The notes under the pieces were generated by a model. The model did no database searches. It was not told where the DNA came from and was given only the letters and a program-made list of their open reading frames with translations. From Macrostomum lignano (taxonomy: Eukaryota): a stretch of 30,163 bases of DNA. This document shows positions 381-3,300 of this stretch, in pieces. The translations under genes and the position numbers were made by a program. The DNA lies in assembly GCA_002269645.1 (NCBI GenBank), contig NIVC01002147.1, positions 1-30,163 on the forward strand, in the 5' to 3' direction. Each line of letters starts with the position of its first letter. Position 1 is the stretch's first letter.

Positions 381-3300
381 CTGGGGGTTAGAGTGGGAGT
401 CCATGTGATATTTTCCTATGTATGGTACACTGTGACAGGAATTCTATCATGTACACCTGTGATAGGAATTCTATCATGTACACCTGTGATAGGAATTCTA
501 TCATGTACACCTGTGACAGGAATTCTATGGTGTACACCGCGGTGATAGAATTCTATCATGTACACGCTGTGATAGGAATTCTATCATGTACACCTGTGAT
601 AGGAATTCTATCATGTACACCTGTGATAGGAATTCTATGGTGTACACCGGTGATAGGAATTCTATCATGTACACCTGTGATAGGAATTCTATGGTGTACA
701 CCGGTGATAGGAATTCTATCATGTACACCTGTGATAGGAACTCTATGGTGTACACCTGTGATAGGAATTCTATGGTGTACACCTGTGATAGGAATTCTAT
801 GGTGTACACCTGTGACAGGAATTCTATGGTGTAACACCTGTGATAGGAGTTCTATGGTGTACACCTGTGATAGGAATTCTATGGTGTACACTGTGATAGG
901 AATTCTATGGTGTACACCTGTGACAGGAATTCTATGGTGTACACCTGTGATAGGAGTTCTATGGTGTACACCTGTGATAGGAGTTCTATGGTGTACACCT
1001 GTGATAGGAATTCTATGGTGTACACCTGTGATAGTAATTCTATCATGCACACCTGTGATAGGAATTCTATGGTGTACACCTGTGATAGGAATTCTATGGT
1101 GTACACGCTGTGATAGGAATTCCATGGTGTACACCTGTGATAGGAATTCTATGGTGTACACCTGTGATAGGAGTTCTATGGTGTACACCTGTGATAGGAA
1201 TTTCTATGGTGTACACCTGTGATAGGAATTTATCATGCACACCTGTGATAGGAATTCTATCTTGTACACCTGTAATAGAAGTCCAACTAACAAATGCGAA
1301 TTCTAAGGAAACGTCTGGCAGCAACAATCCCAAAAAAAAGACGGCCCACTAACAGTGTAGGAGTAGGCTCTCTGGTCCAGATCCCACAGAAGCAGCTGCA
1401 TGGAGCCGATGTAGTAGGGCTGGGACAACTGCACAACAATGGCGCCATTGCCCAGCTGGTGGCAGGTGTAGCCGGAGTCCCAGTCGTAATTCTTTGTGTC
1501 GCCGTTAATTAGAGCGTTGCGCAAACCTGCTAACGCCTTCGATAACGCAGGCGGACTTTGCTACGGTAGCCACATTCTCCTCCGGCGTTATGAGCCCGTC
1601 AGTGAGGAGAACTGGCGTCTGGTGTAGAAAGCCTCGCAGCGCCACACAGTGGAACACCCGGTTGACTGTGTTGTGGTGCCCACTATGCGGATGTACCGCA
1701 CCACCCGCTCGGGGAAGTACAGCTCCTGCCAGCTGCGGCCAGGTAGGCCCGGTGGTCGATCACTGGACCCAATCCGTCTCGTTGATGCTCACCTGATGGT
1801 GTTGGGGAGGGGGCTATTTATTGAGCCTCACCTTACTATAGTAGCTATGACTCACTTCAATATAGTAGCTATTTGACTCACCTCAATATAGTAGCTATTT
1901 GACTCACCTCAATATAGTAGCTATTTGACTCACCTCAATATAGTAGCTATTTGACTCACCTCAATATAGTAGCTATTTGACTCACCTCAATATAGTAGCT
2001 ATTTGACTCACCTCAATATAGTAGCTATTTGACTCACCTCAATATAGTAACTATTTGACTCACCTCAATATAGTAACTATTTGACTCACCTCAATATAGT
2101 AGCTATTTGACTCACCTCAATATAGTAGCTATTTGACTCACCTCAATATAGTAGCTATTTGACTCACCTCAATATAGTAGCTATTTGACTCACCTCAATA
2201 TAGTAGCTATTTGACTCACCTCAATATAGTAGCTATTTGACTCACCTCAATATAGTAGACTCACCTCAATATAGTAGCTATTTGACTCACCTCAATATAG
2301 TAACTATAGGACCTGGTGTCCTTGTCCACAGAAGCAGTCGCAGCAGGTTAATGATGGAAGGTTGGCCGAGCTTTACTACAATGCAGCCATTCTTATCATC
2401 TATTGGGTGCCGAGTGAAGCCGCGGTCCAGATCGTAGTTGACGGTGTCCCCGTCCAGCAGGACGACCCGGCACTCGCCTTTGGTCACCTGGGCGCCGTGG
2501 CGGATAGTGGCCAGGTTTTCCTCGGGCAGCAGGATGCCTCGATACCGGAGTTCGCAGTCCTTGCGAGCGTTTTTCTCCTGTGGGCGGTTTAAATCAGGTG
2601 ATTAGAATCCCCAGGCGATTAGAATCCCCAGGCGATTAGAATCCCCAGGCGATTAGAATCCCCAGGCGATTTAGAATCCCCAATGCGATTAGAATCCTCA
2701 GGTGATTAGAATCCCCAGGCGATTAGAATCCCCAGGCGATCAGAATCCTCAGGTGATTAGAATCCTCAGGCAATTAGAATTTTAGGTGATTAGAATCCTC
2801 AGGTGATGGTTAGAATCCTCAGGTGATGATTAGAATCCTCGTGCAATGGCTAGAATCCACAGGTGATGCTCAGAGTCATCAGGTGATTAGAATCCTCAGG
2901 TGATGGTTAGAATCCTTAGGTAATGATTAGAATCCTCAGGTAATGATTAGAATCCTCAGGTGATGATTAGAATCCTCAGGTGATGATTAGAATCCACAGG
3001 TGATGCTCAGAGTCATCAGGTGATTAGAATCCTCAGGTGATTAGAATCCTCAGGCAATTAGAATTTTAGGTGATTAGAATCCTCAGGTGATGTTAGAATC
3101 CTCAGGTGATGATAAGAATCCTCGTGCAATGGCTAGAATCCACAGGTGATGCTCAGAGTCATCAGGTGATTAGAATCCTCAGGTGATGGTTAGAATCCTT
3201 AGGTAATGATTAGAATCCTCAGGTAATGATTAGAATCCTCAGGTGATGATTAGAATCCTCAGGTGATGATTAGAATCCACAGGTGATGCTCAGAGTCATC

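Follow-up and report, generated by a model that had tools for sequence, protein, structure and literature searches.

We analysed contig NIVC01002147.1 of the Macrostomum lignano assembly Mlig_3_7, which is referred to here in its whole length of 30,163 bp as the window. Mlig_3_7 is a PacBio/Canu assembly with Pilon polishing, its annotation was guided by transcripts, and 15% of the M. lignano genome is composed of simple and tandem repeats (PMC5730564). The minus strand of the window carries the exons of an orthologue of BTBD9, 60-64% identical to the fish, urchin and spider proteins. These exons were called by tblastn with three orthologues together with three-frame translation, and the resulting model (Table 1) has reached about 675 amino acids at the window edge. 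We focus here on the fourth intron of this gene, which consists almost entirely of tandem copies of a 26-bp unit similar to the end of the preceding exon and which may have been created by amplification of that coding segment.

Tandem Repeats Finder (TRF) detected the 26-bp array at positions 1827-2307, with 18.8 copies, 95% matches and a score of 857, and the full unit with at most 3 mismatches was matched 17 times, compared to 0 in 100 dinucleotide-preserving shuffles. Read on the minus strand, exon 4 ends with ...aggtcctatagttactatattgag, which is followed by gtgagtcaaatag ctactatattgag gtgagt..., and this arrangement is repeated. The 9-mer GAG|GTGAGT is present in 17 identical copies on that strand, with the donor G at 2290, 2264, 2245 and then each 26 nt to 1881. 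Two degenerate donors, GAA|GTGAGT at 1855 and AAG|GTGAGG at 1831, lie downstream of these 17, and the acceptor reads cag|GTGAGC, exon 5 beginning at 1792. Both junctions of the intron are AG|GT, the heptamer AGGTGAG is found at each of them, and the spliced exon 4-exon 5 junction is itself a proto-splice site AG|GT (ttGAG|GTGagc). The unit's own AG (aaatag|c, without pyrimidine tract) is a poor acceptor. When cut in the '...GTGA' phase, the segment 2312..1789 falls into 20 consecutive units that all end with GTGA. The first of these units is exon 4 sequence (23/26) and the last one ends in exon 5, so that the spliced mRNA would retain exactly one unit. Altogether, 477 of the 498 nt of the intron fit unit copies. 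That the productive junction is the one at the first copy follows from homology with the orthologues (...SYSYYIE|VSINETDW...). The initial annotation of this DNA, which had proposed a 26-bp array of perfect donors with the first copy as the real junction, AG|GT on both sides and an intron body made of amplified junction sequence, agrees on each of these points with the TRF result, the comparison with shuffles and the orthologue homology. The rest of the window and about 100 kb of other M. lignano loci contain no copy of the unit, and a dispersed satellite was rejected on this ground.

The intron body is a minisatellite derived by tandem amplification of a piece of coding sequence (CDS) that straddles the exon 4/exon 5 junction. 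Without gaps and in phase, the unit matches at 23/26 the segment made of GTGA and the 22 nt that precede it at the end of exon 4. Within the spliced CDS (2039 nt), no site gives it a better local alignment than its own junction (score 21.5 versus a null maximum of 16; 0/300 shuffles), a match that is carried by the exon-4 side. The 13 nt of exon end that had initially been assigned to the unit do recur in the array, except that the exon has T and not C at position -13 (agT tac), and the similarity reaches further, to 22 nt upstream of the donor: the 9 additional in-phase bases match at 7/9 (P=0.0013), a level attained by only 3/2031 of the 9-mers of the CDS. The T variant of the exon recurs in two internal units. 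A match of the unit to the spliced CDS on both sides of the junction had also been claimed, and this stands for exon 4 and fails for exon 5, where a gap is needed past GTGAG and the similarity is at background (empirical p=0.27 for this side alone). The exon segment encodes (R)SYSYYIE, which is conserved in all orthologues, indicating that the array derives from the exon and not the reverse.

To place this intron among animals, BTBD9 loci were taken from Lytechinus (urchin), Puntigrus (fish), Caerostris (spider), Capitella (annelid), Adineta (rotifer) and Saccostrea (oyster). Each annotated protein was mapped exactly onto its own DNA and all introns were set on one protein alignment; BTBD9 gene records were also looked up for Stylophora, Amphimedon and Bradybaena, and none is on record. 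The initial annotation had named an intron at IE|VS in distant animals as a finding that would refute its interpretation and leave only the local expansion of an old intron, and such an intron is absent in 6/6 of these orthologues, which represent six phyla. Intron 4 is a lineage-specific intron of M. lignano BTBD9. Ten intron positions are common among the six distant animals, at least eight ancestral introns have been lost from the M. lignano gene, and its introns 2-5 occupy four positions that are found in 0/6 orthologues. The possibility that all its introns are novel was rejected, as intron 1 (LLDIK|ED) is old and common to the spider, the annelid and the oyster.

One of the ancient positions lies very close to intron 4. 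A phase-2 intron within the Arg codon (AG|G) of the motif D-x-D-x-(R)-SYSY is present in 6/6 orthologues, 22 nt upstream of the M. lignano donor, at a site where the window sequence is contiguous. Intron 4 and this lost intron form a near-intron pair, 22 nt apart and with AG|GT at the novel site, which raises the question of whether the ancient intron could have slid 22 nt downstream, a duplication of the junction providing its new splice sites. The left edge of the repeat homology lies within 1 nt of the ancient site (2312-2313, ACCAG|GTCC), as such a relocation might lead one to expect; the p-value of this coincidence is roughly 0.04-0.08, and it is left without explanation. We nevertheless consider relocation highly improbable. 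Since 22 is not divisible by 3, stepwise sliding over this distance would break the frame, no sequence of the old intron is left upstream, and at least eight other ancestral introns have also gone without trace, which makes loss the simpler account. Moreover, since ancestral introns are about 110-190 nt apart, a new intron would fall within 22 nt of one of them by chance about one third of the time; the nearness of novel introns to lost ones was for this reason rejected as a signal. According to Lehmann et al. (PMC2891723), an AG|GT site and a distance that is not a multiple of 3 point to tandem duplication rather than to sliding, and both are found at intron 4.

The reading that fits these results best, and in which we would place about half of our belief, is that intron 4 was created by tandem amplification of a 26-nt coding segment, in a multi-copy version of the tandem-duplication model of Rogers. 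The 3' half of BTBD9 would first have lost its ancestral introns. An exonic segment containing AG|GT would then have been duplicated and expanded, whether by slippage or by unequal exchange, with the consensus donor GTGAGT formed where two copies meet (GTGA+GTC). If the first copy's GT is spliced to the AG that precedes the GTGA of the last copy, all extra copies would be removed and the original frame restored, while the terminal copies would have decayed, the last one gaining a C-rich acceptor tract. We infer the order of these events, with loss before duplication, and the way in which the 3' tract arose. The single unit that would be left in the mRNA after splicing is a prediction of the tandem-duplication model. 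We note that only 21-39 nt of intron 4 are not repeat, against 73-140 nt for the other small introns and non-array remainders of this sample, and that array copy numbers shift fast between genomic copies that are 98-99.6% identical.

Several observations weigh against such a birth by duplication. A lone extra copy of 26 nt is too short to be spliced and shifts the frame; the intermediate must have been tolerated, which is plausible only because the gene has several copies. On the exon-5 side, the similarity to the unit is limited to GTGA(G), a sequence expected of any good donor and also of the commonest Val-Ser codons. At the 3' end, the last 21 nt, CCCCCTCCCCAACACCATCAG, are not unit-like and the terminal unit measures 39 nt instead of 26, so that a pure duplication model needs extra events there. 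The neighbouring introns 3 and 5 are array-filled yet have unique sequence at both ends, which shows that arrays also expand inside existing introns of BTBD9. Finally, intron 4 was read from the sequence of the single contig NIVC01002147.1 alone, and indel errors (or decay of the copy) throughout this contig make the fine details of the array uncertain.

A second, possible explanation, to which we give roughly a third of our belief, is that the array lengthened and rebuilt an intron that it did not create. An older intron of about 34-39 nt at IE|VS, gained by any mechanism, for example by repair of a double-strand break leaving a direct repeat of AGGTGAG, would later have undergone a duplication across its 5' junction that took in 22 nt of exon together with GTGA and was then amplified. 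The putative array-free intron would be, for example, GTGAGG...CCCCAACACCATCAG. Consistent with this, GTGAGGCTCAATAAATAGCCCCCTCCCCAACACCATCAG (1831..1793) can be read as a complete mini-intron of 39 nt, AGGTGAG stands at both junctions, and the intron closes, like introns 3 and 5, with an ordinary C-rich tract and CAG. These two introns, together with one intron of a paralogue of the REEP5/6-like gene located in the window, are arrays grown inside introns with unique ends, and the rapid change of copy number between near-identical genomic copies is likewise compatible with secondary growth. On the other hand, 34-39 nt is far below the 73-140 nt of the sample. In addition, neither version of the seed accounts for the whole sequence: a seed of 13 nt of exon and 13 nt of intron leaves unexplained the 7/9 match between GTCAAATAG in the unit and GTCCTATAG in the exon, whereas a seed of 22+4 nt leaves unexplained the unit-like GGCTCAATAAATAG right after the last GTGA.

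The array also bears on splicing, and the product of each alternative donor was translated. In 18/18 cases the product reaches the same in-frame TGA nine codons past the junction (IEVSQIATILR*), and the first donor alone is therefore productive; it is identical in sequence to 16 others and is the farthest from the acceptor. The initial annotation had counted about 17 competing perfect donors, had calculated that a donor k copies downstream adds 26k nt and had expected every third copy to keep the frame. The competitors number 16 beside the real donor, the successive downstream donors add 26, 45, 71, 97... nt because the second unit has only 19 nt, and none of the alternatives, every third copy included, leaves the frame open. 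Splicing presumably proceeds from the first donor, and productive splicing is implied by the 724-aa transcript-guided BTBD9 models of the other two genomic copies.

These two further copies of the BTBD9 region are located on NIVC01000168.1, 99.6% identical to the window over a comparable 11.7 kb, and on NIVC01000099.1, 98-98.6% identical. An intact 724-aa BTBD9 model is annotated on both of them, while BTBD9 is unannotated on NIVC01002147.1. In the window, exons 4-6 (1-2577) contain at least eight isolated single-base frameshifts, mostly at homopolymers, compared to 0 in exons 1-3 and in the REEP gene; apart from these, the protein sequence of exons 4-6 is well conserved, with 0 in-frame substitutions to stop codons. 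The contig looks like a poorly polished, indel-ridden haplotig, or it may alternatively represent a decaying third copy of BTBD9. Both the number of copies and the 19-nt unit may be inexact, the contig being an error-prone PacBio sequence. The frameshifts, the missing annotation and the small size of the contig (30 kb, with 99.6% identity to a part of NIVC01000168.1) could even suggest that the array or its size is an artefact of such a haplotig, or that the expansion took place in a pseudogenised BTBD9. We regard this as very unlikely: long-read assemblers do not invent about 18 near-identical units in phase with an exon, isolated single-base indels, mostly at homopolymers, with no in-frame stop substitutions and 60-64% identity to distant orthologues fit sequencing error, and the other copies could not give a 724-aa product unless introns 3-5 were spliced out in much the way of the present model. 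Protein searches and an exhaustive representative search gave no match to a Macrostomum BTBD9 protein. The assignment of the window to M. lignano agrees with a REEP5-like open reading frame at 28469-28870 that is 100% identical to M. lignano BOX15_Mlig025257g3.

The copies also differ in their other arrays. The copy on NIVC01000099.1 lacks a 9.7-kb block of intron 1 (window 10080-19816) that contains 52/53-bp arrays (10203-11689 and 14369-18159). Further arrays vary 2-3 fold in repeat number between genomic copies: a 43-bp array has 12.8 versus 15.8 repeats, a 61-bp array 13.3 versus 5.5 and a 32-bp array 73.7 versus 28.7.

Table 1. Features of the BTBD9 gene and of the intron 4 array in the window
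Feature	Position	Strand	Remarks
BTBD9 exon 1	21494-21132	-	
BTBD9 intron 1	21131-4216	-	16.9 kb
BTBD9 exon 2	4215-3982	-	
BTBD9 intron 2	3981-3842	-	
BTBD9 exon 3	3841-3506	-	
BTBD9 intron 3	3505-2578	-	928 nt; 20-bp array 2603-3457 fills 92%; novel position DAIQ|EKNARK
BTBD9 exon 4	2577-2291	-	EKNARK...LLLWDKDTRSYSYYIE; one single-base frameshift near 2327
Site of lost ancestral phase-2 intron	2312..2313	-	window gacaccag|gtcctat contiguous
Copy 0 of the repeat	2287..2312	-	GTCCTATAGTTACTATATTGAG (last 22 nt of exon 4) + GTGA (intron start); 23/26 vs consensus GTCAAATAGCTACTATATTGAGGTGA
Productive 5' splice site GAG|GTGAGT	2285..2293, donor G 2290	-	sole donor restoring ...YYIE|VSINETDW...
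BTBD9 intron 4	2290-1793	-	498 nt; 26-bp array; phase 0, IE|VS; lineage-specific position
Array body	1828..2286	-	16 full 26-nt units, 13 identical to the consensus, each with decoy donor GAG|GTGAGT
Truncated 19-nt unit	2260..2242	-	
Two T-variant units	2085..2034	-	
One 25/26 unit with GAA|GTGAGT and one degenerate 24-nt unit	within array body 1828..2286	-	
Irregular terminal unit, 39 nt	1789..1827	-	GGCTCAATAAATAG (degenerate unit start) + CCCCCTCCCCAACACCATCAG + GTGA (first 4 nt of exon 5)
C-rich acceptor tract, 21 nt	1813..1793	-	CCCCCTCCCCAACACCATCAG
BTBD9 exon 5	1792-1354	-	VSINETDW...AYSYT; at least 6 single-base frameshifts; uninterrupted across three ancestral intron sites
BTBD9 intron 5	1353-381	-	973 nt; 27-bp array 425-1278 fills 88%; novel position AYSYT|VDTS
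BTBD9 exon 6	380-1	-	continues past window edge

Three consecutive introns of BTBD9 (3, 4 and 5) are array-filled, all of them at novel positions. The unit of intron 5 (TTCCTATCACAG|GTGTACACCA) resembles the acceptor junction of the same intron, CAG|GTGTACACCA matching ccccag|GTGGACACCA at 12/13 (empirical p=0.0037, about 0.05 when corrected), and its array offers about 31 acceptor-like decoys. For intron 3, 11/14 positions agree between the unit TCACCTGAGGATTC and the donor of that intron, TCAG|GTGAGGCTTC, a similarity that is not significant (p=0.05); on the opposite strand, this unit reads CAGGTGAT. A derivation of all three arrays from their own junctions was thus not retained: it holds for intron 4 only, is suggestive for intron 5 and is not significant for intron 3. 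A broader and rather unlikely proposal is that splice-junction sequences are preferred seeds of minisatellites in M. lignano, the (C/G)AG|GTG core resembling the classical minisatellite core. If so, junction seeding would be a recurrent, genome-wide route for the birth of introns at new positions and for their inflation, and BTBD9 introns 3-5 would be products of one process; were such arrays common in this repeat-rich genome, the instability of minisatellites would be tied to intron turnover. In some 130 kb of M. lignano DNA, about 15 minisatellite families were seen, and 5 of them contain the motif (C/G)AGGTG(A/T) where about 1 would be expected, a count that comes from a small sample with a motif chosen post hoc and is to be taken as a lead only.

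Few well-documented cases of intron gain have a source sequence that can be identified (PMC4974935). The examples of the Rogers (1989) model, based on tandem duplication of a proto-splice AGGT site, include an intron of vertebrate ATP2A1 (Hellsten et al. 2011, PMC3265369) and one of potato RdRp (Ma et al. 2016, PMC4974935). As in these cases, an exonic AG|GT segment lies in tandem in M. lignano, splicing would use the first copy's GT and the AG preceding the last copy, the protein would be unchanged and the source is recognisable. The M. lignano intron differs in being made of about 18 copies of a 26-nt unit instead of one long duplicate, in having a 3' acceptor tract that is not unit-like and in being known from sequence alone. 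The closest counterparts are the fission-yeast introns SPOG_01682 and SOCG_00815, which consist of 24-nt tandem repeats of neighbouring exon sequence (Zhu & Niu 2013, PMC3629103; also PMC4974935). There too a short exonic unit (about 24-26 nt) in several copies forms the intron and the similarity extends into the flanking exon, although the yeast introns comprise 2-4 units, whereas that of M. lignano has about 18, belongs to a metazoan and contains 16 perfect decoy donors. In Drosophila, near intron pairs are sites less than 32 nt apart that never coexist, and those of the tandem-duplication class have AG|GY at the novel site and a distance that need not be a multiple of 3 (Lehmann et al. 2010, PMC2891723). 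The M. lignano pair fits this class (22 nt, AG|GT, ancient site contiguous); the footprint of the duplication is erased in the Drosophila pairs, whereas it is intact and amplified here. Human alternatively spliced introns derived from tandem arrays have reportedly been described by Zhuo et al. in PNAS in 2007, with donors and acceptors both repeated and alternative in-frame products made. The two systems have in common that each unit carries splice-site sequence and many equivalent sites result; they differ in that M. lignano repeats donors only and every alternative choice leads to a premature stop.

Intron 4 would then represent the Rogers mechanism in its multi-copy form, which is already known, and is notable for its copy number and its tractable host, M. 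lignano being a laboratory animal with transgenesis. If the amplification of coding sequence is indeed its origin, it is a metazoan intron gain whose 26-nt coding source is still readable in about 18 copies, beside a lost ancient intron. With 17 identical donors in a row of which only the most upstream is productive, it also constitutes a natural experiment in donor choice.

Some additional features of the window were noted. Intron 2 of BTBD9 (3842-3981) sits in a Gln/Ser-rich insertion of about 35 residues that the orthologues do not have. Exon 2 ends with CAGCAGCAG|GTGGCT and exon 3, in its part at 3730-3841, holds CAGCAGCAGGTGTCG 66 nt in. This intron may have an alternative acceptor or have arisen in a duplication-like way. 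Within intron 1 are a remnant of a mariner-like transposase at 4833-5914 (+) and a 1.5-kb low-complexity tract rich in (TC)n at 6426-7910. A second mariner-like remnant, at 26842-27867 (-), is located in the stretch that separates BTBD9 from the REEP gene. The window gave no match in Rfam and tRNA scans. The REEP5/6-like gene (TB2/DP1/HVA22 family; 28469-29016, +) has a single intron of about 123 nt. Its paralogue, seen at loci L010 and L011, is split by two introns that measure 1.4-5.3 kb; in one of them a 37-bp array, unlike the junction, starts 17 nt past the donor. Downstream of the REEP gene, a 43-bp array occupies 29956-30163 (also locus L005, 11517-12065), and its unit holds CCCAGGTGAGGC, which is donor-like on the REEP strand.

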